From Octopus sinensis (Eukaryota), in assembly GCF_006345805.1 (NCBI RefSeq), contig NW_021836289.1, forward strand, positions 124,001 through 188,000: 64,000 nt of DNA. The letters are read 5' to 3'. A program made the position numbers and the translations under genes. Position 1 is the stretch's first letter. Each line of letters opens with the position of its first letter. The notes below the pieces were generated by a model. The model was not told the origin of the DNA, did not search any database, and saw only the letters and a list, made by a program, of their open reading frames with translations. Positions 1-48,973 of the stretch are shown here, one piece after another.

Positions 1-150
1 AAACGTGACCACTTGAAAATGTGTTTTTTTTCAATTTTTATAGATTCTTATGTAAAATTTCCAAGGAATAACAAATTTAAAACCTTTCTATCTACACATT
101 TCAATTTTTATTTTTGTCACTGTCGGCTACATTTTCAAAGTAACTACATA

Positions 151-1951
151 CAGTGAATCCTCGCAAATTGGCCACCTCGCAAATTGGCCAATTTTTAAAT
201 TGGCCAATTTTTTCACAATTTACTAAGAAAAAAATTAATTTTCTTAGTAAATTGGCCAATTCTCAAATTGGCCACAATTTTTGAATTATTATTTTTTTAA
301 TTAGAAAATAAACTATTTTTTTAATCACATGTCTTATAAAATTTTCGTGGACGTTATACTCGGCTCACTTTTCTTGAAAAAACACAAATTATAAACTACA
401 AGGAAGAAAATGACAGTGTTTCGTGTCAGCTTCTGGCTGACAGATTCTCACATTTATTCCACAAGACGATCTCGAGAAAGACGATCAATAATCTACTGCT
501 TAATAAAGACTCTATTTTACGGGATTCGAAAATCTATCAAAATTCGTATAAAGCTGCTCACAAACCAAAATTTCCTACGCTTGAAGAAAAATTGATCGAA
601 TGGATGGATACAATAGAGTCTAAAGGTATTAATTGAAAACCAATTTTTAGGTGGTTTTTTGAATGATTCCTTAATATCGTGTAAGGCTGCGCATTTTGCC
701 GAAGAGCTACAACTTAGTAACTTTAAAAATTCTAATGGATTTCTGGCAAAATTCAAAAAGAGACACGGTTTTAGAATGCTAAAATTACATGGAGAGATGC
801 GAACAGATAAAGTAGTTGACATTAATTCTTTTCGTGAAGAATTTAAAGAAATTTCTAAATCGTATAAGCCTGATCTAATTTATAATTTGGATGAAACTGC
901 ATTATACTACAAGCTTATTCCATCGAAAAGCGTATGCAGAAACCGATTCCAAGGATACAAAAATTTTAAAGACCGTGTGTCTATTATGCTTTGTTCAAAC
1001 ATGACCGGAAGTCATAAATTGAAACCTGTGATGATTGGAAAACCAAAAATGCCTAGATGTTTTAAAAATTTTGACTATGGATGTCTTGTCTCATATTATA
1101 GCTCACAGAAAGCTTGGATGACTGGATCTATTTTTATTGATTGGATTATTAGCTTTGATCTCCAGCTTAAAATTAAAAAGAAGAAAATTTTATTGCTAAT
1201 AGACCACTGTCCTGCACATTCTATTCCTCAAAACTTGGATTGTATTAAGATTTTATTTTTTCCTAAAAATTCTACTGGATTACTACAACCAATGGATATT
1301 GGAATTATAAAAACCTTCAAGACTCATTTCATGAGAAGAAAGCTACAGTACTTAACTGATTTGCTGGAGACTGAAAATATTTCTGTATACAATTCATACA
1401 AAAATTGACATTAAAAGATGCAATTTGTTTGTTAATATGGCTTGGGATGACGTATCTACTGAAACTATTCAAATTGTTTTAAGATTTTAAATGAATCTAA
1501 TCACGAAAATACATTAATTGAACATTATGAGACTGAAATTGAAAGAACTGACATTTTCGATCCTCTAATGAGCGAAGATTTTCTAAATATCGAAAACACA
1601 GAAGATCAAGATATAAACGAAAATTGTTTACAAGAGGATCAAGAGTCTGAAATTAGCGACGAAGAGACAAAAATCATATATCCACTCGATAGAAAAGATA
1701 TTGCAAAGACATTAACTAGAATAGAAAGGCAACTTTACTGTAATGCAGAAAATGAGAATGATGTTTCGCTGATTACTGCAATAAGAAAATACAAAGAAAA
1801 TGTAAAAAGAGCAAATAAAAAGGAATTAGGGATTGAATTTTATTTTAATAAAATTTAAACGTGTTTATTTTATTTTTTAAATATTGATTTTTTTCAAATT
1901 GGCCATTTTCTCAAATTGGCCATAAAATCTCTATGTACCAAAAATGGCCAA
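151..1951 (+). mobile_element. Tigger/pogo DNA transposon copy 1; right TIR lacks its terminal 17 bp
   Basis: TA then CAGTGAATCCTCGCAAATTGGCCA at 151, with many subterminal AAATTGGCCA repeats. Near-identical to 5024-6828 up to position 1951, where LINE sequence begins. Confidence 0.95.
329..1858 (+). CDS. Tigger transposase (CENP-B HTH + DDE_1); 25-nt intron at 626-650; homopolymer frameshifts
   Basis: NGFLAKFKKRHG, YNLDETALYYK, SQKAWMTG, LLLIDHCPAH, LLQPMDIGIIKTFK. Frameshifts near ~345, ~1400 and ~1423 are absent from copy 2. Confidence 0.9.
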
Positions 1952-4045
1952 GATTGAACAGGGATGGAGACAGCACGGAACCCTGCGGTACCCCGTTTGG
2001 AAGATAGCGTTGTTTGGAACAGTGGTCCATGAGGGAGACGTAGCCCATGCGGCCCGATAAGAAGTTAGCAAGCCAGGATTTGTAGTTTGAGTCTAGGCCG
2101 GTCATGAGAATTTTCTTGGTGAGACCGCAACGGGGGACGCTGTCAAAAGCTTTAGATATGTCGATGGAAGCTAGAACTGTTCGTTTAGGGGGCCTCTTCA
2201 CATTGAAGCCGTCCAGGACGAACTGGGAAAGCGTTGTTAAGTGAGTGGTTGTTGAGTGCAGTGGTTTGAAGCCATGTTGGGTGTGGGATGTTGGTAAGTG
2301 TTTCGAGACTCGTGAAAGGATTAGTCTTTCGAGGATTTTAGATAGCGTGCACAAAAGAGAGATTGGGCGGTAGGAGCTTGGAATGCCAGCCGGTTTGTTC
2401 GGTTTGATTAACGAGATGATACGTGATTTTTTCCAAAGAGATGGAATTTCGTTTTTTACAACGGAATTGTTGAAAATAGACACTATAGCGTTGATGGCGT
2501 TGGGGCCAAGTCTTTTAAGGTGGTGGATAGAAATGTTGTCAGGCCCCGTGGCGGGGGAATTCTTCGAGTTTTTTATACACTGCGAAACTTCGTCTGCAGT
2601 GAAAGGCGGTAAGGATTCCGTGCGAGGTAAGCTCCTCCGAGATTTGGCGACCTTTCGGTCGTTTTTGTTTGAGGTTTTGTGGCTTAAGGAGGCGTAGTAG
2701 TTCATGAGCGAGTTTGCCTCCTGAACCGGATTCAGTGGGATGTTTGAGTTAGAAGTGGCAGATTCATGGGACTTGGGCTTTTCATAAATCAAATCATTCA
2801 TGTCCTTCAGGGTCTTCCAGATTTTGGAGCTGTTAGATCTGTAGTCGATTGAGGTGATAAATTCGGTCCACTTAGAATCTGCGTGCAGGTTAATGGCAGC
2901 GGTGATTTGTTTGTTTAGGTTAGCCAATTCAATGGAGGACTCGGCAGAGTGCCTTGATATCTGTTTCAGTTTGTTGCGAGTCTTTATGAGGGATTTCACT
3001 TCGTGGCTGTAGTTAGGGCGGAACTTTTCAATTTTTCCTTGGGGGATGAAATTTTTGGAGGTGGAAATGATGAGAGCATTAAGGTGATTGACTGCTGCAT
3101 TAGTCGAGCGAAAGCTGTTGATGTTGAAGTCATTCAGAGAGTTTTCTAGGGCAAGGCGGTATTCGTCCCAGGAAGCTCTTTTGTAGTTAGTGTAACAGTG
3201 GCGTTGTAGGTCAATGTTAGATTTTAGCGCATTCTCGATTATGATTGGGTTATGGTCACTGGTTAGGTCATAAACCACCTTCCAGGAGGTAGCAGAGGCC
3301 AGAATAGGAGTACACAGTGAGATGTCGGGAGAGGAGATTGCGTCGCCATTTCTTGACGGGGTTCTGGTATGGGATGAGGAGTTGTTGAGGATGACTAAAC
3401 CGTCAAGTTGATCAAGTAGAAGAGTTCCTCTTGAGTTGAGGCATTGATTTTTAAGCCAAATCGGGCTCTTTGCGTTCATATCACCACAGATAAAGACATT
3501 ACTGAGGGACTGGAGGTTTTGTATTGAAGGGGTCCAGCCGTGAGGACAGGATGAACACGGAGGGATGTACATGTTGATCAGCCTTCTGGTTGAGCGCCCT
3601 GTAGAGACCGTTATAGCCGTCAGCTCAATTACAGGGTCGTTATCGATTAGTGTGTAAGCTTGTGATGTACAGTTAGAGAAAGGGATTGATTTTCTGATAA
3701 GGGTTAAAAGGCCCCCGCCATTTACGGAGTTCGGTCTGTCTCGCCGGATGTATGAGTAACCCGGGAAATCGGGCAGGCGGTTTTTGGGCGAGAGCTTCGT
3801 TTCCTGCACCAAAGCAATGTCCACGTCGTACTTCTCCATGAAGGAACAGAGTTCAGTGGTCTTGTGGGCGATCCCATTAATGTTTACTTGCAGGATACGA
3901 AGTAGGTTCTTCCTGGCGGGTCCAGGGTTTTGTTCAATGTCTCCTTTATCTTCTGTCTCCAAATGAAAACAAATTAAGTTAGGAATGGGCAGAGGGGAAA
4001 CTCCGGAGGAGGCTAAAGCACGCACTTTCCTGCGGACATCAGTAA
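1952..4045 (-). mobile_element. Ingi/Vingi-like non-LTR retrotransposon (2A-like motif, APE endonuclease, RT truncated at its 3' end)
   Basis: ORF 1911-4025: GDIEQNPGP, RILQVNINGI, ALVQETKL, ICGDMNAK, SPDISL, SDHNPI, YRPISLL, DISKAFDSV, GVPQGSVLSPSLFN, then an abrupt break at the Tigger TIR. Confidence 0.85.
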
Positions 4046-4099
4046 ATAAAAATTAATTTTTATAGTCTTTCCCGCAGAGCCATATTGATTTATAACACA

Positions 4100-4810
4100 C
4101 TTTATTTTATGTACAAGCGAGTCCAGCTGTCTGATACGATCAAAAGCTTCCTCGAGAAAAGTTCTTTTTTGCGTAGGGCCACATCGATAGAGTTGCCAGC
4201 TACCGGGGCTCCGAGGATAAAAAGTTCGTTAATGGGAGTAGATTGAACTCCCGGGATAAGATCGCAGAAAGAGGAAACAGCGTCTTCGAAAATAGATTGC
4301 GAGGATTCGAGGTTGGAAATTTCACATTTGGAGAAATTTAAAATGAGACCGATTTTCTCCAGAGCCGGAATGATTTTAATTATGTCCTGCAGAACGATGT
4401 CCGGAGAGCTACCGAGAGTAGCGTCGTCGAGATATCAAAGATTTAATGGAGAAGATAGAAGCTTGGTCACCTCAGAGATTCCAAGACAAAAAAAGGAGTG
4501 GCCCCAGAGGGCCTCCCTGTTGGACTCCCGAAGCAGACGGGATAGTGTCGGAATCAAAAATAAGGGAAGATGGTTGGCCGTATGATTCGAAAGTTAGCCC
4601 AAATAAGGAAGGACAATACTCAGAGCAGGCCTCAAAAACTCTGTCCCGTCGGATACTGTTGAATGCATTTCTGATGTCAAGCTTGATCAGAATGTTTGGA
4701 CATTGTGATTTCCTGCACGCTTCTGAGAAAGTGCGGATAGCATGAACAGCAGCACATCCTCCAGGCACGCCGACCCCGAGTTGGACTGGACTGAGCTTTG
4801 CGGCAATGGT
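4100..4810 (-). mobile_element. CRE-clade retrotransposon RT fragment (frameshifted)
   Basis: QLGVGVPGGCAAVHA, KLDIRNAFNSIRRD, GVQQGGPLGPLLF, GLILNFSKCE, ILGAPV. Confidence 0.8.
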
Positions 4811-5023
4811 GGGGATAATTTTCTTGCATGCGATCTATGAAGCGCTACGAGACCGTTAATGCTAAATTATCGAGGCCTTTTCCGCCCTCAAAAGACAAAT
4901 ATCAATAAAAACTTTTTACTTAAAAAATTATTTTTATCTTATATTCTATGAAAAAAAACATGGGTCTGAAACATCTAGTAATACAACATTCTCTAATTAT
5001 TAGTAAATACATGAAATAAACTA

Positions 5024-6828
5024 CAGTGAATCCTCGCAAATTGGCCAATTTTTAAATTGGCCAATTTTTTCACAATTTACTAAGAAAAAAATTAATTTTC
5101 TTAGTAAATTGGCCAATTTGAGAATTGGCCACAATTTTTGAATTATTATTTTTTTAATTAGAAAATAAACTATTTCTTTAATCACATGTCTTATAAAATT
5201 TCTCGTGGACGTTATACTCGGCTCACTTTTCTTGAAAAAACACAAATTATAAACTACAAGGAAGAAAATGACAGTGTTTCGTGTCAGCTTCTGGCTGACA
5301 GATTCTCACATTTATTCCACAAGACGATCTCGAGAAAGACGATCAATAATCTACTGCTTAATAAAGACTCTATTTTACGGGATTCGAAAATCTATCAAAA
5401 TTCGTATAAAGCTGCTCACAAACCAAAATTTCCTACGCTTGAAGAAAAATTGATCGAATGGATGGATACAATAGAGTCTAAAGGTATTAATTGAAAACCA
5501 ATTTTTAGGTGGTTTTTGAATGATTCCTTAATATCGTGTAAGGCTGCGCATTTTGCCGAAGAGCTACAACTTAGTAACTTTAAAAATTCTAATGGATTTC
5601 TGGCAAAATTCAAAAAGAGACACGGTTTTAGAATGCTAAAATTACATGGAGAGATGCGAACAGATAAAGTAGTTGACATTAATTCTTTTCGTGAAGAATT
5701 TAAAGAAATTTCTAAATCGTATAAGCCTGATCTAATTTATAATTTGGATGAAACTGCATTATACTACAAGCTTATTCCATCGAAAAGCGTATGCAGAAAC
5801 CGATTCCAAGGATACAAAAATTTTTAAAGACCGTGTGTCTATTATGCTTTGTTCAAACATGACCGGAAGTCATAAATTGAAACCTGTGATGATTGGAAAA
5901 CCAAAAATGCCTAGATGTTTTAAAAATTTTGACTATGGATGTCTTGTCTCATATTATAGCTCACAGAAAGCTTGGATGACTGGATCTATTTTTATTGATT
6001 GGATTATTAGCTTTGATCTCCAGCTTAAAATTAAAAAGAAGAAAATTTTATTGCTAATAGACCACTGTCCTGCACATTCTATTCCTCAAAACTTGGATTG
6101 TATTAAGATTTTATTTTTTCCTAAAAATTCTACTGGATTACTACAACCAATGGATATTGGAATTATAAAAACCTTCAAGACTCATTTCATGAGAAGAAAG
6201 CTACAGTACTTAACTGATTTGCTGGAGACTGAAAATATTTCTGTATACAATTCATACAAAAAATTGACATTAAAAGATGCAATTTTGTTTGTTAATATGG
6301 CTTGGGATGACGTATCTACTGAAACTATTCAAAATTGTTTTAAGATTTTAAATGAATCTAATCACGAAAATACATTAATTGAACATTATGAGACTGAAAT
6401 TGAAAGAACTGACATTTTCGATCCTCTAATGAGCGAAGATTTTCTAAATATCGAAAACACAGAAGATCAAGATATAAACGAAAATTGTTTACAAGAGGAT
6501 CAAGAGTCTGAAATTAGCGACGAAGAGACAAAAATCATATATCCACTCGATAGAAAAGATATTGCAAAGACATTAACTAGAATAGAAAGGCAACTTTACT
6601 GTAATGCAGAAAATGAGAATGATGTTTCGCTGATTACTGCAATAAGAAAATACAAAGAAAATGTAAAAAGAGCAAATAAAAAGGAATTAGGGATTGAATT
6701 TTATTTTAATAAAATTTAAACGTGTTTATTTTATTTTTAAATATTGATTTTTTTCAAATTGGCCATTTTCTCAAATTGGCCATAAAATCTCTATGTACCA
6801 AAAATGGCCAATTTGCGAGGATTCACTG
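5024..6828 (+). mobile_element. Tigger/pogo DNA transposon copy 2, full length
   Basis: Perfect 24-bp TIRs CAGTGAATCCTCGCAAATTGGCCA (5024-5047 and 6805-6828), with TA on both sides. Confidence 0.95.
5186..6719 (+). CDS. Tigger transposase, ~500 aa in consensus with copy 1; 25-nt intron after IESK
   Basis: ORFs 5186-5494, 5516-5827 and 5748-6719 join via the intron and two 1-nt homopolymer shifts (~5515, ~5823) that are absent in copy 1. Confidence 0.9.
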
Positions 6829-6872
6829 TATTCCAAAAAAACATTGTTCAAAAAAAACGTGACCAAATTCGA

Positions 6873-7888
6873 TTAGTAATTAATATGCTTCCCTTTCGTC
6901 TTATATACTTTCAGAACTCGTTTGTGGAAGCTTAAAACATATTTTCTTATTAGTTCCGGGGGGAGGTTGTTCCAGATTTTCAAAACTTCTTGCTTTAAAG
7001 TTTCCTTATCAAGCCTTCCCATATTGCGTAACTGGAACTTTATATAGGCCCACACATGCTCGATTGGATTGAGATCTGAACTTTGTGCAGGCCAATTAAT
7101 TGTTTTGATTTTTCTTCTTCAAGAAATTTCCTTGTGACTCGAGCTGTATGCTTTGGGTCGTTGTCGTGCATAAACTCTAAGTCAGTTAAACTCATTTCTC
7201 CGGCGGATTGGTTTAAATTTTGTGCTAAAATTTGCACATAATGCGCATCCGTCATAATTCCGTCAATAAAAACGAGCCGGCCTACTCCATTGGACGAAAT
7301 ACAGCCCCAAGCTAGAACACTTCCTCCTCCAAATTTAACTGTAGGTAAAATGTTGGCCGAATGATATCTTTCACCGCGAAAATATCGAACATTATTTCTT
7401 TTATTTGCTGAAAATAACTCAAATTTTGTTTCATCGGAGAAAATAATTTTGCCTAGACCTTCAGACGAGATCCCTAAATAATTTTCAGCAAATAATTTTC
7501 TCTTTAACACGTTTACTGGTCGTAATAACGGTTCTTTACACGGTTTTCGATTTTCTAGTCCAAAAGAATATAAAGCATTCCTTATTGTTGATCGAAAAAG
7601 TCGTAAATTGTGCTTAGATTCAATGTAATTTGCAATTTCTTGTAAAGTGGAAAAATGATTTTGATCATATTTCGTCAATATTGCGTTTTTAATCGCCAGA
7701 GTAAGTTTTTCTGGACGACCAGAACCAACGGCACGTTCAAAAGGCATTCCGTTTTTCATTTTCGCGCTGACTTGCTGCACAAAAGATTTTGAAACATTGA
7801 ATTCTTTGGCGATTGTTCTTTGTGAGCATCCTCGCCTTAATTGTTCCGCTATTGAATATTTTTTGATCAGGAAACTTTGAGATGACAT
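6873..7888 (-). CDS. Tc1 DD34E transposase, one frameshift near 7110
   Basis: N-terminal HTH (GSGRPEKL), IIFSDETKF, TVKFGGGSVLAWGC, FMHDNDPKH, then shifted-frame WPAQSSDLNPIEHVWAY. Confidence 0.9.
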
Positions 7889-7949
7889 CGTGCTGGATTA
7901 AAGTTTTTCTTCAAATCTTGGAATTTTTTTAATTTTGAATTTAATATCG

Positions 7950-8407
7950 ATAATTAATTTCTCAATAGGATTATGTTTATGGTAGATATGTAGCCTGGCG
8001 GATTGCCAAACTGTTTCCCCGGATGATGGCAATCGAGAACCGTTGCATTAGCCAATTCGCCTCCCGAGGATCATGGGTGCGCAATGAGATTTTGGCTCCG
8101 AGCTTGCGAAGAAACTTTTCTGTTTTTGGACCGAGAGCACCCGACGTCTCCGCCGCGATCGGCACCACGGAAAACTTCTCCGAGAGGGCAGAATATTTTA
8201 AAAGCTTTAAATCTTCAGCCTTCTTAGCTGCAGATTTGGCCTCCAGAGCACACGAAGTTAAGTGAGAAGCAGAAAAGGTGTCGCAGCAGGTTGCGTCTCA
8301 GACGAGGCCTTTTCCGCCTTCAAAGGGAAAAAGGGTCATCCCGTCAGGACGTTTCCCGTCGCCGCGATCAAGGCCCGGTGGTTCGAGAACCGAAGGAAAT
8401 CCCGCCG
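7950..8407 (-). mobile_element. 5'-truncated CRE retrotransposon (restriction-like endonuclease end) inside the Tc1 5' region
   Basis: [15 protein letters not shown], then in other frames DATCCDTF and PIAAETSGALG...WLMQRFSIAIIRGN. Confidence 0.85.
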
Positions 8408-8667
8408 AAAAATCAAGTAATTAAAGAAAAATCAAGTAATTGTAAAAAAAAGTGTAACAAAAATAAGTGGTCACGTTTTTTTTGAACAAAGGTTTTTTTA
8501 AAATACTTGGTTAGCCTGGGAATATAGCCGATCATGAAATAATAAATAATGAATCATGTAGATTAAATGATTTTAAATTTAGTATTAAAATTTTTGAAAA
8601 TAAGATACACAAATTAAGAAAAACACATATTTTTAAGTGGTCACGTTTTTTTTGAACCGACTGTATA

Positions 8668-9400
8668 TTTTTTTTTTTTTTTTTAGAAATTAGAGTTTAT
8701 TTTTTGAAAATAATAACTGTAAACGAAAACAGAGAGAAAAGAGAGTTAACAAGAGGACTTCCCCGCCTCGTAGATGGAGAAACAGTTTCCACGTACAATG
8801 GCAAGGGAAATCCTCTGAAGGAGCCATCCACACTCACGCGTGTCGTTTCTCTTGCGAGAAATCAGACGACCCAGCTTTTTGAGGAAAATGAGTGACCTGT
8901 CACCGATTACGCCAGAGGTCTCCACGGCGATCGGGGTAAACAGATAGCGTTCCGAGAGATTGGTGTACTTTGAAATCTTTAATTCTTCTGCTCTGCGAGA
9001 AGCAGAGCCAGCTGCGACAGCTGAAGGAGGAAGATTTAGTTCAGAAAAAGTATCTGAGCAAGTTGCATCCCATATCAGCGATTTTCCGAACTCGAATGGG
9101 AAGGTGGATAGACCGTCAGGCCTCTTTCCGTCTCCCCTAGCAAGCCCAACTGGTTCGAGAATTGATGGGATTCCGGCAGCTTTGAGCCCCCTCAGGACGA
9201 CGTCATTTAGGGCAGCGTGGCGTGGGGCACGCCCAGCACTGCGTCTGCAGGAAAGAGGGTGTAGTCCGTACTGGTCGATCATGGCCCCACAGCGGCACTT
9301 GTGAATTTCGCAGATCTTCAAACCGAGGCGGAGGGAGATAGCTACTCTGAGGCAATCGCCGTCGAGTAGTGTCCCGATGCTCGGAAGAGGGGGGGCCTGT
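8668..9400 (-). mobile_element. 5'-truncated CRE retrotransposon with poly(A) tail
   Basis: HKCRCG...HPLSC...RHAALND...[16 protein letters not shown]...WDATC...RISLAIVRGN. AATAAA and a 17-nt poly(A) (T-run 8668-8684). Confidence 0.9.
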
Positions 9401-9611
9401 ATATTTATCTTTAGTGAATATTTGTCTATACTTATTGATATAAAAAACCAATTACTCTTCAGTGGTGTCGAAATTCTTATGAAAGCAGGTAGAAATCCAA
9501 GAATTCGTCGTCGACTTTTTGCATGGGATAATCAAATCAGGAAATTTTTCCACATTAAAATTCTTAAATAGAAAAAACGTCCTTTCCATCCAATTTATAT
9601 ACAAATCTTTT

Positions 9612-10070
9612 ACTGGCCGTGCTCCCAGACACTCCGCTATCAACGAGACTATTTCGGCTGCGTTACAAGCAGCTGGATTCCCGACAGAACTGGAACCCGT
9701 TGGGCTTGACCGTGGAGACGGCAAACGCCCAGATGGAGTCACCATTTTCCCGTGGAGTAATGGGAAATGCCTCGCGTGGGACTCCACGTGCACAGACACC
9801 TTCTCAAAGACCAATATAGTTGACTCCGCGATCAGTACAGGCTCAGCCGCTGAGAAGGCTGAGGTACATAAAGTTCAGAAATATTCCAACCTGTTGGACA
9901 ACTTCATCTTCTCCCCAATATCCGTAGAAACCTCCGGGGTCATGAGCCAAAAATCGTTCGAACTCGTCGGGAAAATCGGGAATCTGATCTTGAGAAGACG
10001 GAGAGAGCCTCGGGAGAAGCAATGGTTGTTCCAAAGAATATCCATTGCGATCAGCAACAAAGAAATCTAA
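9612..10070 (+). mobile_element. CRE endonuclease-domain fragment
   Basis: RAPRHSAINE...[16 protein letters not shown]...AWDSTCTDT...PISVETSG...WLFQRISIAI. A related copy lies at 62690-63140. Confidence 0.85.
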
Positions 10071-10342
10071 AATACAAGAAATAAAATAAACCGGTCGATT
10101 TTTGACAAACACATTTTAAAGGGATTAATCAGCATAAAAGTGACCTTATCGAGATGTTGATTATTTAGACATATTCTTAGACTTTGTCAGAAACACCGAA
10201 CAACCGAATAATGGAAAATTATTCTCGCGATACATTTTTTAATTTTATTGTATTAACTATAATATTTAATAAAAATAAAATAAAATAAATACCAACAGTA
10301 TGAAAGATAAATAAACTTTTAAATATTTTTAAAGATTAGAAA

Positions 10343-11143
10343 ATGAAAATTTTCTTCATCATTTTAAACATATTTTACATTGGATGTAACTACATAAATT
10401 CTCCTCAAATTTCAAGAGACGAACCTTTAATTCTTACTGACTACTTAAATAATGGACAAGGAGAATTGGCTAGGGAATTAAGCAGAGTTGAACCTATAAT
10501 AGGAAATGCTGAACTCTACGCTGGTTTTTTCAGAGTAAGCAATGAATGTGAAAGAAATACATATTTCTGATATTTTCCAGCCGAGGTTTAATTATTTTTA
10601 TGATCACAAAAGAACGGAAACATATCAGCACCTATTCTAGTTTGGTTGCAGGGTGGACTCGGAACTTCTTCAATTTATGCTGCTTTTGTTGAAAATGGTC
10701 CATACTTTTTTAATTCAGACGACGAATGTTATTTATTTTTAATTAATTATGCAGTAAAATTAAGAGAGATTTCGTGGACAAAAGAGTTTAGCGTTATTTA
10801 CATCGACAATCCTGTATATTTTAATTAGTTACTTCTAGGTCGGATCTGGATTTAGTTTTTCAGATACAGAGTGCTACCTTACAAACGAAGAACAAGTTGG
10901 TTATTGTTTATCAATGTAATCTTATCAAACTGACACGAGTTAGTTTCGTGCAACAATTTTATCTGCTTTTTCCAGAATTGAGGATTAACCCCCTTTACAT
11001 TACTGGAGAATCTTATGCCGGAAAATATATTCCTGCAATGGTTTCTGCAATAGATCAATATAACTGGAACAATCCAACGCCAATTAATTTAGTTGGAATG
11101 GTAATTGGAGATGGTCTTTGCGATCCGTATAATGTATGTTAAT
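10343..11143 (+). pseudogene. CPVL: Serine carboxypeptidase (CPVL/vitellogenic-like, S10), 5' half; premature TGA and truncated
   Basis: Signal peptide, YAGFFRV, WLQGGLG (normally GGPG), VENGP, YIDNP|VGSGFSF, ITGESYAGKYIP, IGDGLCDP, with micro-introns. TGA at 10568-10570 replaces Trp and there is no recognisable 3' half. Confidence 0.8.
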
Positions 11144-11754
11144 TGAGGGTTTGAAATCATGTTTCCCAGTTTGTTCAAAAGTCACTTTGATTTCTCATCA
11201 TGAAACCACTCGTTTTAAACAAAAATGGGACGAAATTATACTTTTCGGTAAAAACAGCGGTATTTTGATTTTTTTGAACCTTAGGTCAGATAATGTCATG
11301 TCCGGCAGTTGTCAACTAACTTTTGCAAATAAACTTTTTTCCGAGTATCCCATAAAATGATTTCTCCAAATCACCTGCCTACTTACTCAATTCCAACGTC
11401 AAAAACTATTAAATAAATCCAGCTTATTATTAAAAAAATAAGTATTATTCAAAAGTATTAATAGCCTCAAAATGATGAAATGGACAGAATAGCTCGAATG
11501 TCATTTCAAATGAGAGGACCAACAATCCAACAAGTCTTAATCAAATGAATAAATATATCACGAGCAATCAAATAAGCACACTTCAGCAAATAAGACTCGT
11601 CAATAAAATAACAAGAGTGCAAAATGATTAAAAAAATATAAAAGAAGACACCGAACTATAATATTCAGACACAACAGATTATTGCAAACAGATTAGACGG
11701 CTCAGCCCCCTGTCTTTACAGATACGCAATACAAGAAGAACAAATATTCCTAAT

Positions 11755-12050
11755 TCTATAAATATGTACAAAAACCGACGTGACATTGACCACAAACGAG
11801 TGGTTGAGGGCTTTTTTGATAGAAAATGTCTAAGTCTCCTACGGAAGCCCGGTTTTTACTCAATTCAACCCCTTCAAGTCTGTTTCGAAAAAGAATGTCA
11901 TCGTAAAGAGCAACAGTCAACCCTGCTCCCGTCAAAGGATGTCTTGTGTTGAACGAGTCTCCTCCTTGGATCAGTCCGGGAACTGAAGGAAATGCATTAG
12001 TAGTATTCCTGCAGGGCAATACCATCATATCCGCGTTATTCACAACATCG
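11755..12050 (-). pseudogene. SQLE: Squalene epoxidase (squalene monooxygenase) fragment
   Basis: GDSFNTRHPLTGAGLTVAL matches GDAxNMRHPLTGGGMTVA. HSFVVNV follows after a frameshift. Confidence 0.75.
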
Positions 12051-12087
12051 AGGGACAGCACTGGGGGAGGACGTTTTTATTAAAAAA

Positions 12088-14320
12088 TTATTCAAAATCA
12101 GCAGATGCCCACATTCCAAGTCTATGAGCCTTAGCCTCATCCTGAGCAAGAAAGTAGTCGTGGGCAAACTGTTGAGATATGTGAACACTGACAGAACACA
12201 GTCCTAGTCTGACCATCTCCAACCCAAAGTCCCTCCTCTCCCCTTCTAGAAGAGTGAACATGACAACATAGGTGACTCGGTCAGTCTCCTCCACAATGTC
12301 AACCAGACAGTTATCCTCTGTCTCCTTGGCCATATTCCTCACAACACAGGAAACAAATGTCTGATTGTACTCCACAAAGGCCAGTCTGCATTTCACACAC
12401 AGTGGGGGATAGTCCTGCAAATGTGTGGGCAGACTACGCACATGACTGGACATGGGCAAGTCCATCTGCTAACAATACACCCACAACCAAGACATAGCCA
12501 TAGTCGATGAAATACAGTCGCATTTCATTTGTCGACTGGTCGACCGACTCGACTCTCGTTCGGTACCAATTCAAGTCACATCTGGCCCTCACAACACACA
12601 GAGAGTTGATTGTGAGTTGAGCAAGAGGGAGGAAAAAGAACTTGCTCTTGTCAATGGGGTTCAACTCTCTCATGGTCTCCTCAATCACCGTCACTACAAC
12701 ACTCACAGAGAATGGTCACAATTCGTCACTCTCTGCAGATAGAATTCGTCCTCCTTTATGTACGACAGACACATTTCCAACATCCTTCTGTCCGCCTGCT
12801 TCGGGGAATCTTCCCAGATCTGGTTATATAAGTGAGAGGACATTTAGTTGCTTCATTCTGGCCACTCTTTGGGCATTCCTCATGTCCTCGTCTTTATCGG
12901 AGCCTGCAGTGAGGAAAGCCAGTCCATTCTCCACCAAAGACATGGCCAGTCCCCTCCCTTCCACGCTCACCCAACCAATAAGGAATCCATAATTATCCAC
13001 CCTAACCACCCTCACGTCCACCTCCTTATTCGTCACCAAATTCCTGACAAACTCGACCCCCCTCATCCTCACACAGTCCGGGGATTTGGGACACCTCACT
13101 CCGTCCAGCAACAATTTGACTCGGTAGTGGTCCCTCACTGTGAGAATGGTCAGACTGGATCCGTAAATGACATGTTCTATCCACGCCTTGAACCACCCCA
13201 TCTTCTCAAACCGCGGAAACAGTGATTTGACCTCAAAAATGTCCTACCAATTGCCCACCCATAACAACATGTGTCAAATCGATCAATTTATCAGTCACAC
13301 TCCACATTCCTAGCTGGGAGTCTCTGCCTATTCTGTGGGTCACACAGAAAATGTACTTCTGTGCTTGGGAGTACTCTGGGTGGGCTGGAGATAGCGATTC
13401 AGCCAGTCCTTTCTGGAGGAGGCTGATGGCTACATCACTTTTCTAAAATAAATATGCCACTGTGACACATTTAGCAAAACAGTGGCAAGAAAAGTGCCAT
13501 TTTTGGTAATCCGAGCAAAGCGGACAGTCACCTTCCTCTGCAAAAGACGAGCGACCATACACGCCTTGGCTTGTTCCTCCCACTCAGTACAAAACCAGTA
13601 CATTCAACAGTCGGGGACTACACACACGTATTCCGTGGAGAGTGACATAAACATACTGCCAGTCCTCTAACAACAGAATTCTCATTTTGGATTCATTCAC
13701 GACGTGTTCAACCAAGCCTACCAATCAGGCCAAATCAGACCAGAACAGTCCCTTCCTTGTCTGGCCAGCAAGAAGGACTGACTGTCCTCCACCACCCACA
13801 GTACTCGCCTCACAATCGCCTGGGAGAGACCCCCCCAGCGACCTCGTCCGGCTTGTCTGGCCTCCTCCTGACAGGCCAGCATCGCCCTGTACTCCCCACT
13901 GCCATATTAACACACATCACCAGTCGGCCGCCTTCCCGACCAGTCGACGGACTGATGACAGGCCAGACAGGACCACTCGTTGGTTGATGCTCTGCCCACC
14001 TCCCAGGTGGAGGGTCACCAGTTCTGTCTCCTGCAGTCCTCCCTCCCGTTTGACGGACACTCGTTTATTCAGACTGAGGGATCGAAGGAATTCACGTGCT
14101 TCCCAGGCAAAGGGCTCGTCTGGCTGGAATGATTTGAGAACTCACTGAATTGGTCGATTCTATGGCCAGTTTAGGGGAGATGACGTTGTATAATAATACT
14201 TTCCAAGGGACAGCACTGGGGGAGGACGTTTCTTGGAGGATTACTGTATTTCCGCTTAATACCTACCCCTATTAGACACGTAACCACTTGCTTCACAACA
14301 AGGTAGGTGTGTTTATTCAT
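12088..14320 (-). CDS. SND1: Tudor staphylococcal nuclease (Tudor-SN), multi-exon, apparently with one fewer SN repeat
   Basis: VKQ|VLSGNTVIL, PDEPFAWEAREFLR, VEHVVNESKMRILL, RLLQRKV, IEHVIYGSSL, FLIGWV, Tudor NWYRTRVE..YFIDYGY, C-terminal GMW. The frame is restored by 19-26 nt GT-AG introns. Confidence 0.85.
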
Positions 14321-14388
14321 ATTAATTTATTTAAAATTAATTGTTTTAACTATTAAATAAATAAAATATTAAAAACATAATTGTTGTG
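14321..14388. promoter_or_regulatory. Putative bidirectional promoter (68 bp, nearly pure AT) between SND1 and MED18 start codons
   Basis: Divergent ATGs at 14320 (-) and 14389 (+). Promoter function is inferred from geometry only. Confidence 0.6.
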
Positions 14389-15094
14389 ATGGATATCAAC
14401 TACATACAAGGACAAGAGGAAGGAGACCAGAAAATGAACAACCTCTACGTCTCCTATGGCACAGTCTACTCAGCAGCCAAAAACGCCTTGCTGACCCGCC
14501 TGTCCCTCCTCTGCGGGGTCAGTCAAGGCCCCCAGGACTTCAAAAACACAGTCTCGACATACCTCCAAAGTACCCCACCCCCACCACACAGGAAACCCCA
14601 ACTCCCAAGACCGTCTCCTCACCGTGAGACGAAAAACCGACAGTGCGGAAAACGTGTGCTACGTCATCCATCACGGAATCGCGGATTCCCTGCCCGACAT
14701 GCCCCACGTGATGTCCCGGTCGATCACGCAATGTCGAGGGGACCTAAAAATAGTCAAATTCCTGGAGGAAATTGGATTTGAGTATTCACGGAGGTTAATC
14801 CGCAGACACACGGCGGACTACATCACGGAAGGACAGGTCGTGTGGTGGGGGACTGTCAAAATATCCATCTACCGGATTATCCCCGTTGGTCCCCCTCTCT
14901 AAGAGTAGTCCAAGTCTCACTCCCTTCATGATTTCACCGAGTCTGTGGTGGTGGAGATCTCCGTGGTGGGGGAGGAGGATGCCTGTGGGGTGCTCAAACA
15001 TGTGATCGACGGCCTCTCTCCGTGTGTGAGTGTTGTGTATTCTAGACTGGTCGATTTTTATAACTTTGGGAAGGATTCGTTCATGTTTGGATAG
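14389..15094 (+). CDS. MED18: Mediator subunit 18, five exons
   Basis: Spliced product LLTRLSLLCG...FLEEIGFEHTADYITEGQVVWWGTVKISIYRI...VVVEISVV...GLSPLVDF parallels MED18 LIHRLRGLCD...FLMEMGF..EFVAKG..KGIMKIMVYKI..LVELSVV..QLKPLV. Confidence 0.7.
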
Positions 15095-15145
15095 TTTTAA
15101 TGACTATTTATATTCACAAAATGCAGACAAATTTGCTTAGTTATG

Positions 15146-15770
15146 TCATTTTCTTTTTAGGAATTGTTTTAATTCGTTTTCTTCATTGCCCACGTAGGTG
15201 TCACGTGGGAGTGTTGTGAGGGAAAAGTAGTGGTAGCTCTTTGTGGTAGAGTTGTCCTCTCTTTTGATCTTCCGGGGGACCACAAAGGGGAGGTCCGTGA
15301 AGGCATAACTGAGCCTCTTCTCTGGCTTGAACTCAAAATTCTCCTCAGCCACACTCCCACGAGAAGAACACTCGGACAGGTGGAGAGTGAAGGCCGAGGT
15401 GTCCTCACTCAGAGAGGTCTCTGACGATTTGGGTGAGTCGGGTGGCTGGGTGACCGCCTTTGATCTATGAATGGTGAGAGGGGAGGACAGTTCTTCCAGT
15501 CTGCGAGTCTGTGACCTCGTCTGCACGTGGGAATCCCGCCCGTCGTCTGCACTCTCAGGACACCCAAACCCTGGAGGTGTTTGAGCAGCCAAATGTAGCT
15601 CTCGATGATGTCCTTTAGTGACGTGAGGGCGGGAAACTCGTCCTCCGACACTACCGAGAGTGACTGGCACTCTGTTTTGAATGTTCGACACGTTTTTTTG
15701 CAGTCTATTTCGTGGAGGTAGTCAGAATAGGGGTATTTAGTTATATTATACCCAATACTAGTTGTGCCAT
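15146..15770 (-). CDS. Hypothetical Ser-rich protein, convergent with MED18
   Basis: Long open frame 15146-15691 plus a candidate upstream exon and GT-AG micro-introns. No family recognised. Confidence 0.4.
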
Positions 15771-41840: not shown

Positions 41841-42914
41841 TTAAAAATTAAGATCTCGGTAGAAATTCATATTGGGATAGTTCTGGAATGTCTGATCAGG
41901 AGTTTGGAAATGCATTGAAGGAGGAAACAGCATTTGATTTGTTGGCTCCCTCAACATACTTTCTGGATAATATTCGTTTCCATAGTGTTGATAATCTGTT
42001 ATAAATAATGAAAACAAACTATTTCCAGGTGTGTTATTCTGGAGGATTTGTGGCCTTTGATTAAACTGATGTTGGTAGATTCCAACTTCTGTGTTATCAG
42101 GAGGTTGATTAAGGGGTAGGAGGCTCGAGTTGCTCGGGTTGTTTTTCCGTTCCTTGGACCTTCTGTTTTGAAACCAGACCTAACACTAGAGACCTCCATC
42201 CTGACTTGGATGACGCGAATTGTTAGTCCAGTCAATTTACTCATTTCTTCCAATATATGACGTGATGGCTTTCTTTCACTTTCGTACAATTCTGTAAGTA
42301 GCCCAATTTGGTGTGGTTTGATCGATGTCCTTCGTCCTCGTTGTTTGGATTTTTGAAGGTTTTTATTGGCTTCATGATTGGCCTGAACTTCCTCACTAAT
42401 GGATCTAGGCTCTTCAGGACTCCCATTCGCTTCCGAACAAGAATTAGGGGACTTTGAGATGCCTTCCGATTCCCCAGTGTTTTCAGTTTTTACTAAAAAT
42501 AACTCGATTACCAAACATGTATTTTTGTGAAAATAGTCCATGCAGTAAAGTGTGGATTTATCAGCATAGGAGAATGAGTCCCCAGTTTTGAGTCTTTTGT
42601 TACAACACCGACACTTGAGGCATTCAACATGATACATATGTGACATGATGATATACACAAACGTATTTAGTTCAATTTGGACGTTACACAACGGACAAAT
42701 CCCATAGAGCCTACAAACTAAGATTTTAATAAAACATTGCATAGTCGTTAAAACAGTAAATCCCGTTCCTCACATAACAAACATTTGTGAGTACTTGAGA
42801 ACACTTAGAGCACTGGAGACAGTTAGTGTGAAAACATGAGTCCATAACACGCAAATGTGGGTGTTTTGTATTAATTACTTCTTGACATTTGGTACATTTC
42901 AGTTGACCATCCAT
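41841..42914 (-). CDS. LHX1: LIM-homeobox transcription factor, Lhx1/5 (Lim1) group
   Basis: Two LIM domains (CxxC..HxxCxxC). Homeodomain RGRRTSIKPHQ..KPSRHILEEMSKLTGLTIRVIQ|VWFQNRRSKERK carries the Lhx1/5 signature KP(T/S)RHI and RRSKER. Confidence 0.85.
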
Positions 42915-47861: not shown

Positions 47862-48258
47862 CCAAGTTTATTGATAGGAAATGTATGGAGTTAATTTGAT
47901 GGAGCAATACGACCTTTTTTTATTGATGGAAGAAGAACTTGTTGACTATACTATTGTGTGACAATATTTCTGTATAAATACTTTTTTACCAATCAACTCT
48001 GTTTTTCTATTGATACTGATTATTTCTATAAAAATTAGATTTATCTAAACCCAATTAATATTGGCATAGATTAGAATCTCTCTTGGTAGCCCCTTTTTTG
48101 ATGCTAAGAATTTGTCCAATTTGACGACAGTAACTAATCCTTGGCATATTTTCTCATTTGATTCCTCTTCAATAGTTGCTTCCTATCACCTTGTTCAGAT
48201 TTTTCTAAAAATTCTATTAGATCTTATTTTCCAGTATATCCATAATGCTTGAAGAATT

Positions 48259-48298
48259 TGGCAGTTTAGCGAAGCTCTGGGTTCGAATCTCACTGCTA
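48259..48298 (+). other. tRNA-like remnant (acceptor stem + T-loop only)
   Basis: TGGCAGT...ACTGCTA can pair (7 bp) around GGGTTCGAATCTC. No D or anticodon arm. Confidence 0.3.
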
Positions 48299-48973
48299 TC
48301 ATTCCGGCTGAAGGTTCCATGCATTACATGCACCCAGGATTGACGAGTGACGCCGTCATCAGTGATTTCACTGCGGAACCGGATGTCTACATCAGCCACA
48401 GCACGAGAGAAAAATAGATGCGGGGGGACAGCTCGTTTGGATTCGTTCGTTTGGATTAGTTAGTTCCTAATAACATGTTCTCTCTTTCTATCTTGATCTT
48501 ATGTGGCTGGCCAGTGCGAGATTTCACATTAAGTTGCGATCTTGCGGACGTGCCTCTATTATTTATTATTATCCATAATCAACAAATTCATTATAAGATA
48601 TTGGATTATTTTTGTAGTTATTAGATTCACTGTTGAGTGTGATTGTTTCACATTTTATCTATTAAGCATGACGGAAACATTTTTAAGTGATCGTAGGAGT
48701 TACTTTATTTCAAGCAAATAATTTTAAAGGTGATTGTATTAATTGGATCATGACAATTTTTTCTGCCTCAACTTTTCTCCTTAGAAAGACAACTATATTT
48801 TTCTTTTTTTTTATTTTCTCGAATGTCTTCCATTATATTAATTCAGTGGGAATACGGCGACGATGACAATCTATGCTTTGTGACAAGAACCAGTGGGTTT
48901 TCTTTTTTATTCATTCATATTCATTTTAAGCAAAACTCTCACTCCCCATTTCAAGTATTGCTAATTCAAAGTA

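Follow-up and report, generated by a model that had tools for sequence, protein, structure and literature searches.

A block of 6,678 bp (positions 151-6828), which splits a terminal repeat of a Tc1 element in the genome of Octopus sinensis, is tentatively interpreted here as the insertion of a composite transposon (macrotransposon) from a young pogo/Tigger family of the octopus; we assign this reading a probability of roughly 40%. Based on the sequence of the window (the whole stretch of 64 kb that was analysed), macrotransposition on the two outermost ends appears to be the simplest reading of the structure, and the block probably arrived as one unit, although the window by itself is no proof of this. 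The features of the block and its surroundings are as follows:

1-150, plus strand: outer part of the left Tc1 terminal repeat, its tip cut by the window start; outer direct repeat at 1-11; aligns to the reverse complement of 8521-8648
149-150, no strand: TA, left-hand copy of the block's target-site duplication; in the alignment, the opposite repeat shows one TA here
151-1951, plus strand: Tigger/pogo copy 1; left 24-bp terminal repeat intact, right repeat without its last 17 bp
1952-4025, minus strand: LINE fragment covering an APE endonuclease and the N-terminal portion of the reverse transcriptase
4026-4104, no strand: AT-rich stretch, LINE 5' leader or filler, without reading frame or similarity
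4105-4866, minus strand: R2-like LINE reverse-transcriptase fragment (LDIRNAFNS ... YLDD; Pfam RVT_1), truncated at both ends
4867-5021, no strand: AT-rich DNA, read from the sequence
5022-5023, no strand: TA left of copy 2, presumed target dinucleotide of copy 2's own earlier insertion
5024-6828, plus strand: Tigger/pogo copy 2, full length; both 24-bp terminal repeats present, Pfam hits on the reading frames
6829-6830, no strand: TA, right-hand copy of the block's target-site duplication (from sequence and repeat alignment)
6831-8663, minus strand: remainder of the host Tc1 (from repeat alignment, motif positions and HTH_Tnp_Tc3_2)
6831-6866: inner part of the left Tc1 repeat, with the inner direct repeat at 6855-6865
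7040-7888, minus strand: Tc1 transposase, continuing frameshifted in 6873-7055
about 7977-8400: 3' fragment of an R2-like LINE nested in the Tc1
8465-8663: right Tc1 repeat, followed by TA at 8664-8665

The host element shows the IR-DR organization of Tc1 transposons, with long repeats, the AAACGTGACCA motif twice in each repeat, a TA flank and a Tc1-type transposase (Pfam HTH_Tnp_Tc3_2, E = 2.2e-11; the homologs are Tc1-like transposases with a PF13358 domain). One of its terminal repeats is present in two halves (1-150 and 6831-6866) with a single TA as the split point. When 1-150 is rejoined to 6831 onward and one TA is kept, the sequence forms a colinear alignment, gapless across the joint, with the reverse complement of 8465-8663 (BLAST of 1-133 against 8648-8521: E = 4.5e-14), and the rejoined TA faces the sole TA of that opposite repeat at the aligned position; the empty site reconstructed in this way is paralogous, being the other repeat of the same Tc1 element, and not orthologous. 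The two occurrences of the direct-repeat motif AAACGTGACCA in the split repeat, at 1 and 6855, are spaced 174 bp apart once rejoined, compared to 170 bp in the right repeat (8478 and 8648). A single TA target-site duplication (149-150 and 6829-6830) surrounds the whole block, and the target is uninterrupted once the block is removed. Since the split repeat rejoins exactly across one TA, the whole of 151-6828 entered, or came to occupy, one TA site. The preliminary description had proposed the two halves of one repeat, spacings of about 174 and 170 bp and a single TA site bounded by the left end of copy 1 and the right end of copy 2, and all of this was reproduced.

The two Tigger copies are colinear, in direct orientation and 99.3% identical. 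Homology between them extends to 1951 in the first and to 6811 in the second; copy 1, as already described, therefore lacks exactly the last 17 bp (TTTGCGAGGATTCACTG), i.e. 17 of the 24 bp of the terminal repeat at its inner right end. At its outer ends, the block has one left and one right Tigger terminus, correctly inverted relative to each other and with complete 24-bp repeats. The same element is thus found twice, bracketing unrelated DNA, with outer ends that are competent by sequence. Differences between the copies include eight 1-nt homopolymer indels that disrupt reading frames; indels of this kind are the sole disruptions in the frame of copy 1 and also occur at another Tigger locus, L001. 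Three further changes are private to copy 2 and fall within its left 180 bp, comprising the loss of a 16-bp unit, an inversion of a hairpin loop (5118-5122) and a T>C substitution at 5176. The derived left-subterminal changes thus belong to copy 2 and not to copy 1.

Assignment to pogo/Tigger is based on the domains found in the frames of copy 2 (Pfam HTH_Tnp_Tc5, E = 8.8e-7; DDE_1, E = 8e-44; a weak CENP-B_N), and the nearest named proteins are Octopus sinensis "tigger transposable element-derived protein 6-like" sequences with 82-100% identity. Copy 2 and the family consensus both begin and end with a perfect 24-bp terminal inverted repeat (CAGTGAATCCTCGCAAATTGGCCA), and TA flanks the Tigger copies in the window as well as at L001, L002 and L005. 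Copies of the family in O. sinensis share about 98-99% nucleotide identity and differ from copy 1 by one to three substitutions outside the left subterminal region, where the alignment is unreliable. After removal of a 25-nt intron, the consensus built from five young copies has an intact coding sequence for a transposase of 502 aa. The family thus appears young enough to have had an active transposase and is possibly still active. As copies 1 and 2 are no more similar to each other than unlinked family members are, their similarity does not discriminate between the readings discussed below. No match to the terminal-repeat pattern was obtained in metagenome or prokaryote collections.

The passenger DNA between the copies consists of 3,070 bp of retroelement debris plus the TA, namely a 3'-truncated LINE, an R2-like reverse-transcriptase fragment and AT-rich DNA. 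The LINE fragment shows Pfam matches to Exo_endo_phos, Exo_endo_phos_2 and RVT_1 (positions 3-132 of 205), carries a 2A-like DIEQNPGP motif at 3918-3941 and aligns to residues 209-842 of a homolog of 1226 aa (P0001). Beyond its breakpoint at 1952, P0001 and a second homolog (P0002) run on with ...LFNFY/F.... The LINE is therefore 3'-truncated inside its reverse transcriptase exactly at 1951/1952, which makes this junction a breakpoint; the candidate explanation of 1951/1952 as a retrotransposition joint was rejected on the same ground. Here, a truncated Tigger abuts a 3'-truncated LINE, and the junction is illegitimate. Because the LINE is 3'-truncated and two unrelated fragments lie beside it, the passenger is not a later insertion in situ.

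The preliminary description had named a LINE and a CRE fragment as passengers. While the LINE and a second reverse-transcriptase fragment were indeed found, the CRE label is not established. LINEs of the site-specific CRE clade would have a C-terminal restriction-like endonuclease behind the reverse transcriptase; the block contains only a reverse-transcriptase fragment (with one frameshift near 4435-4475) and the top solved-structure matches are R2 proteins, albeit weak (E = 0.005). A short scrap at 4869-4894 is homologous, in 22 of 24 bases, to the part of the R2-like LINE that encodes the endonuclease domain (8303-8326), and neither the window nor six O. sinensis loci yielded a further match to 4867-5021. 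The neighbouring fragments 8746-9321 and 9519-10070 display endonuclease-like motifs by eye and gave no Pfam or PDB match. Overall, the evidence supports a putative R2-like LINE of the RLE (restriction-like endonuclease) group for the element at 4.1-4.9 kb and reaches no further.

Under macrotransposition, the donor locus would have contained two Tigger copies in direct orientation, separated by about 3 kb, with the upstream copy probably inserted within a LINE. Loss of the inner (right) end of the upstream copy would have left its left end pairable only with the right end of the downstream copy. The transposase would then have brought together and cut the two outermost ends, and everything between them would have been pasted into a TA of the older Tc1's terminal repeat, with duplication of this TA. 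The anatomy, with two direct copies, a dead inner end, intact outer ends and one TA duplication, appears as expected for a macrotransposon insertion. The "asymmetric TIR" model of composite formation predicts a degenerate inner end (PMC11544213), and the dead inner end of copy 1 fits this prediction. With two intact ends, copy 2 could also transpose by itself, so that only a minority of events would involve the far left end. A comparable arrangement exists at L002, where an upstream copy that retains a left repeat but has no right end is separated by 7.3 kb from a complete, equally oriented copy, the latter nested in a LINE reverse transcriptase; by its layout, this locus appears to be the kind of substrate postulated for composite movement. 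The earlier proposal of a composite transposon moved by transposase thus stands with respect to anatomy, and movement as a unit would be its simplest reading; no second copy of the block, donor or excision footprint was detected in the 64-kb window or in six annotated O. sinensis Tigger loci.

Besides macrotransposition, three routes yield the same structure: a composite insertion from one donor, recombination into a resident Tigger and a double mis-join of the assembly. In a one-donor composite insertion, a single Tigger, inserted at the TA beside AT-rich, R2-like and LINE DNA, would give rise to both arms, with the inner ends end-joined at 1951/1952, and the donor would keep its original arrangement. 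Either the left and right ends of sister chromatids paired (alternative transposition) and inserted into the Tc1 TA, after which replication or repair synthesis proceeding inward from both ends aborted, or a simple Tigger excised from the site and the gap was filled by synthesis-dependent repair, which changed template to an ectopic Tigger and continued for 3 kb into the adjoining DNA. We consider this origin unlikely, but worth serious attention. The 1951/1952 junction between truncated Tigger and truncated LINE fits it equally well as macrotransposition, and also fits homologous recombination; under macrotransposition the junction requires a separate deletion, whereas one-donor models would generate it directly. 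A single event would cover the illegitimate junction, the Tigger 17 bp short and the LINE broken in its reverse transcriptase, and would also explain why copy 2 has a TA and foreign DNA on its left and why the block has one TA duplication at its outer ends. The private changes of copy 2 are of slippage and template-switch types in its repeat-rich left 180 bp and would suit error-prone repair synthesis. The same architecture is on record for composite insertions of maize Ac/fAc (PMC4270019), but this record concerns hAT elements only, in engineered or special maize alleles, and not Tc1/mariner/pogo; moreover, several coupled steps are required, and the six O. sinensis loci contain no donor.

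Homologous recombination, which the preliminary description had raised as an alternative in the form of ectopic recombination, would start from a resident Tigger in the Tc1 TA, in which ectopic gene conversion mended a break with a Tigger-LINE-R2-like-Tigger locus as template, or into which a circle carrying Tigger(1-1801) and the passenger integrated by a single crossover. The two 1.8-kb flanks with more than 99% identity offer ample homology, and the product would be identical to the observed structure, including the single TA duplication. Yet the number of steps exceeds that of direct transposition, since both a resident element and a pre-existing composite or circular donor are needed; heterology of 3 kb is rarely copied or integrated in the germ line, and no sequence feature specifically favours recombination, which we regard as improbable. 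Even less credence is given to an assembly artefact, in which a simple Tigger in Tc1 and a separate Tigger-LINE-R2-like-Tigger stretch were threaded through the 1.8-kb repeat. The 99.3% identity over 1.8 kb would favour such an error, and the frame-breaking homopolymer indels, seen also at L001, suggest a lightly polished long-read assembly. However, two independent wrong joins, one per copy, would have to restore both halves of the same Tc1 repeat, real differences (16-bp unit, loop inversion, substitution) separate the copies, and repeats of 1.8 kb are normally spanned by long reads. Finally, a sequential origin in place is highly improbable: a first Tigger at the TA would have undergone one-ended cleavage at its right end, lost 17 bp and captured 3 kb of filler before a second Tigger entered the same TA. 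The breakpoint indeed lies at a transposon end, a site of transposase-induced breaks, and Tigger always targets TA, but exactly the same TA would have to be reused and the end of a multi-fragment filler of 3 kb would have to coincide precisely with the former target TA.

Maize Ac/Ds provides the established precedent for macrotransposition, by elements that are closely linked and lie in direct orientation (Huang and Dooner 2008, in the account given in PMC4270019), and the block is a probable new example of a phenomenon already known. As far as this account goes, the maize macrotransposons share with the octopus block the linked direct copies, the use of the outermost 5' and 3' ends, the transport of the intervening DNA and one target duplication. 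They differ in being hAT elements with an 8-bp duplication whose movement was tracked genetically, whereas the octopus block belongs to pogo/Tigger, has a TA duplication, resides in an animal and would have its movement deduced from one static copy. In the maize Composite Insertions, which arise by alternative transposition with re-replication, transposon termini enclose DNA from the donor flanks, the internal junction is newly formed by NHEJ or HR, and a target duplication flanks the whole; the authors note that the insertions have macrotransposon structure (PMC4270019). Outer termini, inner flank DNA, a novel internal junction and a target duplication are common to the octopus block, while the maize cases derive from reversed Ac/fAc ends at one studied allele (PMC4270019). 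In bacterial composite transposons (Tn5, Tn10, and Tn630 of the IS630 family; PMC11544213), two element copies likewise bracket a passenger and degenerate inner ends favour the outer ones; IS630 and pogo fall into the same broad IS630/Tc1/mariner group. The bacterial elements, however, are prokaryotic, carry functional passenger genes, are multi-copy and are known to move, unlike the dead retroelement debris in the one known octopus copy.

Abortive gap repair of Ds and P elements usually yields internally deleted single elements with short filler. These products resemble the octopus block in their internal illegitimate junctions, foreign filler and intact ends, but lack a full second copy plus 3 kb of flank, which the block has. 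To our knowledge, no natural macrotransposition has been documented for pogo/Tigger, and we know of no equivalent of the Composite Insertions in the Tc1/mariner/pogo group.

We lean slightly towards the view that the octopus pogo/Tigger transposase performs alternative transposition in nature, pairing the ends of different or sister copies and thereby relocating or duplicating kilobases of neighbouring host DNA; we are not aware of a description of this activity for the Tc1/mariner/pogo superfamily in animals. If the block moved as a unit, or through pairing of ends of different copies, cut-and-paste elements of the Tc1/mariner/pogo type would be able to transduce several kb of flanking DNA in an animal germ line. 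As far as we know, such transduction is well documented in maize Ac/Ds and bacterial insertion sequences and hardly at all in this superfamily. Since the passenger is dead retroelement DNA, the block has no obvious functional consequence, and its value would rather be that of a mechanistic footprint and of a lead to a Tigger family that is young and possibly still active. Alternative transposition, if true, would be a way in which a transposase drives segmental duplication and shuffles sequence in a repeat-rich cephalopod genome, and, as octopus genomes are very repeat-rich and heavily rearranged, such events could add to their dispersed duplications.

The window opens with 9 kb of nested transposable elements stacked on one another, in which a block of two Tigger copies and the passenger DNA between them (151-6828) lies within the left terminal repeat of an older Tc1 element. 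The parts of this stack are as follows:

1-150 and 6831-6866: left Tc1 terminal repeat in two halves, from the alignment of the rejoined halves to the right repeat
149-150 and 6829-6830: TA copies flanking the block
151-1951: Tigger copy 1, in direct orientation relative to copy 2
1952-4025, minus strand: LINE coding for an APE endonuclease plus the initial two thirds of the reverse transcriptase (Pfam)
4105-4866, minus strand: second reverse transcriptase fragment (LDIRNAFNS ... YLDD), frameshifted (Pfam and reading frames)
4869-4894: short piece similar to the endonuclease-domain part of a related element at 8303-8326
remainder of 1952-5021: AT-rich DNA
5024-6828: Tigger copy 2, complete, with TA (5022-5023) before its left end
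7040-7888, minus strand: Tc1 transposase, HTH_Tnp_Tc3_2 (Pfam)
8465-8663: right Tc1 terminal repeat, with TA directly after it

When bases 1-150 are rejoined to the sequence from 6831 onward with one TA kept, the product is colinear with the right Tc1 repeat in reverse complement; the joint shows no gap, and its TA faces the single TA of the right repeat. The direct repeat AAACGTGACCA, a predicted binding site of the Tc1 transposase, occurs twice in each terminal repeat, with a spacing of 174 bp in the rejoined left and 170 bp in the right one, and BLAST independently paired 1-133 with 8648-8521 (E = 4.5e-14). The split repeat reported in the preliminary description is therefore borne out, and, since it rejoins across a single TA, all of 151-6828 occupies one TA site. 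The Tc1 transposase was also used in a homolog search for another copy of its family, which could have supplied an independent empty site, and the best O. sinensis protein, at 59% identity, belongs to a different family.

Both Tigger copies were assigned to the pogo/Tigger family by their HTH_Tnp_Tc5 and DDE_1 domains (Pfam), and they are 99.3% identical. The last homologous bases are 1951 (copy 1) and 6811 (copy 2), so copy 1 is without the last 17 bp of its 24-bp right terminal repeat, a loss that had already been proposed from the sequence. The two copies differ by one 16-bp unit CCTCGCAAATTGGCCA, by a small hairpin whose loop is inverted (GGCCAATT-CTCA-AATTGGCC vs -TGAG-), by one T/C substitution and by eight single-base homopolymer indels. 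Comparison with the Tigger copies at three further O. sinensis loci (L001, L003 and L005) showed that the ancestral sequence has the 16-bp unit twice, a CTCA loop and T. All three real changes are private to copy 2 and lie in its left 180 bp. We accordingly rejected a duplication of the 16-bp unit in copy 1, as two units are ancestral in other family members and copy 2 lost one. Apart from these three changes, both copies are consensus-like, sharing no private variants and no unusual likeness. Their reading frames are broken by single-base homopolymer indels only, at sites differing between the copies. Because the L001 Tigger copy (8373-10530) is full of the same kind of indel, with many more than the window copies, the sequences point to long-read errors left in the assembly and not to genuine decay.

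The Tigger relatives indicate an octopus as the source: the copy 2 transposase frame has annotated O. sinensis counterparts at 82-100% identity, and Tigger copies at GCA_006345805.1 loci show ~98-99% nucleotide identity. The majority consensus, 1,823 bp long and built from five young copies, specifies a 502-aa transposase without interruption after removal of a 25-nt GT...AG intron, found at 627-651 and 5485-5509 (plus strand) in the window copies; the frame is continuous only without it. Between copy 1 and young copies at other loci, only 1-3 substitutions were counted outside the left subterminal region, where the alignment is unreliable. These low counts indicate a recent family, and the similarity of copies 1 and 2 therefore says nothing on their relationship. 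The L005 copy, which is young, full-length and TA-flanked, is one substitution from copy 1; its right terminal repeat contains a small internal duplication AGGATTCA (L005 11960-11985).

Two directly oriented Tigger copies, 7.3 kb apart, are present at L002, another O. sinensis locus. The upstream one (1009-2227) is older and has a TA-flanked left repeat and no right end; the downstream one (9484-11197) is young, complete with both repeats, and nested in a LINE reverse transcriptase. The architecture of this pair is that of the donor postulated for the block.

All recognisable pieces of the passenger are on the minus strand, and the passenger has no evident function. The LINE frame matches residues 209-842 of P0001, a homolog of 1226 aa, and then enters Tigger sequence directly, so the LINE is cut on its 3' side within the reverse transcriptase, exactly at 1951/1952. 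Retrotransposed copies have an intact 3' end and a truncated 5' end. As this LINE is 3'-truncated at the joint, 1951/1952 is a breakpoint or deletion junction, and retrotransposition of the LINE into Tigger was rejected. Past the break, LINE homologs read ...LFNF-Y/F..., and a TA-containing tyrosine codon may possibly have lain 1-2 nt beyond it; the conjecture that Tigger was formerly nested in the LINE and that ~20 bp were lost later would fit such a codon. Just upstream of the endonuclease domain, the LINE carries a 2A-like 'ribosome-skipping' motif (DIEQNPGP, 3918-3941, minus strand), and P0001, 37% identical, has IEQNPGP near its N-terminus too. For the second reverse transcriptase fragment (4105-4866), matches among solved structures were to R2 proteins only, and weak.

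Searches for a sister or donor copy of the block covered several collections. Exact-product look-ups with the junction-spanning LINE frame and the copy 2 transposase frame returned no record, and in the homolog search of the protein collection the LINE frame had no relative above 37% identity, which means that its family is missing from that collection. The 24-bp Tigger terminal repeat pattern had no match in metagenome or prokaryote-genome collections. Comparison of six O. sinensis loci with the whole window recovered Tigger copies, with no passenger DNA and neither inner junction (1951/1952 or 5021/5024); the passenger likewise does not recur elsewhere in the window.

The structure requires that left and right Tigger ends of different copies were joined to either side of one TA, and five routes can yield it. 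Macrotransposition, i.e. movement as a composite transposon, is the leading explanation, with a probability of about 0.42. Two linked Tigger copies at a donor site would have been mobilised on their outermost ends, and the dead inner end of copy 1 may have helped the use of the outer ends. No other route explains the outer structure in so few steps, and the substrate required for macrotransposition occurs in the octopus genome as the L002 pair. Ac/Ds macrotransposition in maize, as cited in PMC4270019, provides a firm precedent, and the asymmetric-end model for composites gives a rationale (PMC11544213). The anatomy described initially was reproduced with its coordinates; movement of the block as a unit stands as the leading explanation only.

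It is conceivable, if rather doubtful, that a one-donor composite insertion took place, in which sister-copy ends were inserted, or the excision gap of a resident copy was used, followed by inward synthesis and joining at 1951/1952. Such a single event would account for both the unusual inner junction and the donor-derived flank beside copy 2. We know of no case in Tigger's superfamily. The route matches the maize Composite Insertions shown experimentally, which the block resembles in architecture (PMC4270019). Homologous recombination, either as gene conversion or as integration of a circle into a resident simple Tigger, is unlikely, although the sequence fits this route and the two preceding ones alike. 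An assembly artefact is quite improbable: it would take two wrong joins, the two halves of one Tc1 repeat would need to have been recovered, and copies 1 and 2 carry real differences. Capture of filler in place, then a second hit in the same TA, is very unlikely and deserves hardly any weight.

Several other features accompany the stack. Three 3'-terminal R2-like LINE fragments with CCHC and endonuclease-like motifs, judged by eye, cluster at 7977-8400 (minus), 8666-9321 (minus) and 9519-10070 (plus); their putative endonuclease-domain frames had no Pfam or PDB match. One sits inside the Tc1 element, and the poly(A) tract of another (poly-T at 8666-8687) adjoins the TA next to the right end of Tc1. 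At L003, 143 bp from the 3' end of the R2-like LINE seen at window 8677-8819 (L003 11061-11203; 92% identity), flanked by repeated AAACGTGTTTATT, lie near the right end of an older Tigger copy. The SINE-like repeat of ~320 bp at 48246-48566 is 99% identical to L001 8939-9261, which interrupts the L001 Tigger copy; this points to possible activity of another young repeat family after Tigger. The GC-rich, intronless and multiply frameshifted segment at ~11700-15700 (minus), with staphylococcal-nuclease-like and Tudor-like parts, looks by eye like a putative processed pseudogene whose parent gene would be of Tudor-SN (SND1) type. A frame at 41999-42742 (minus) that encodes a LIM domain and, after it, a homeodomain-like segment probably represents exons of a LIM-homeobox host gene, in keeping with the metazoan source, which it confirms.

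Taken as a structure, the block belongs to the known class of macrotransposons and composite insertions, of which it would be a new example, for pogo/Tigger as well as for cephalopods.
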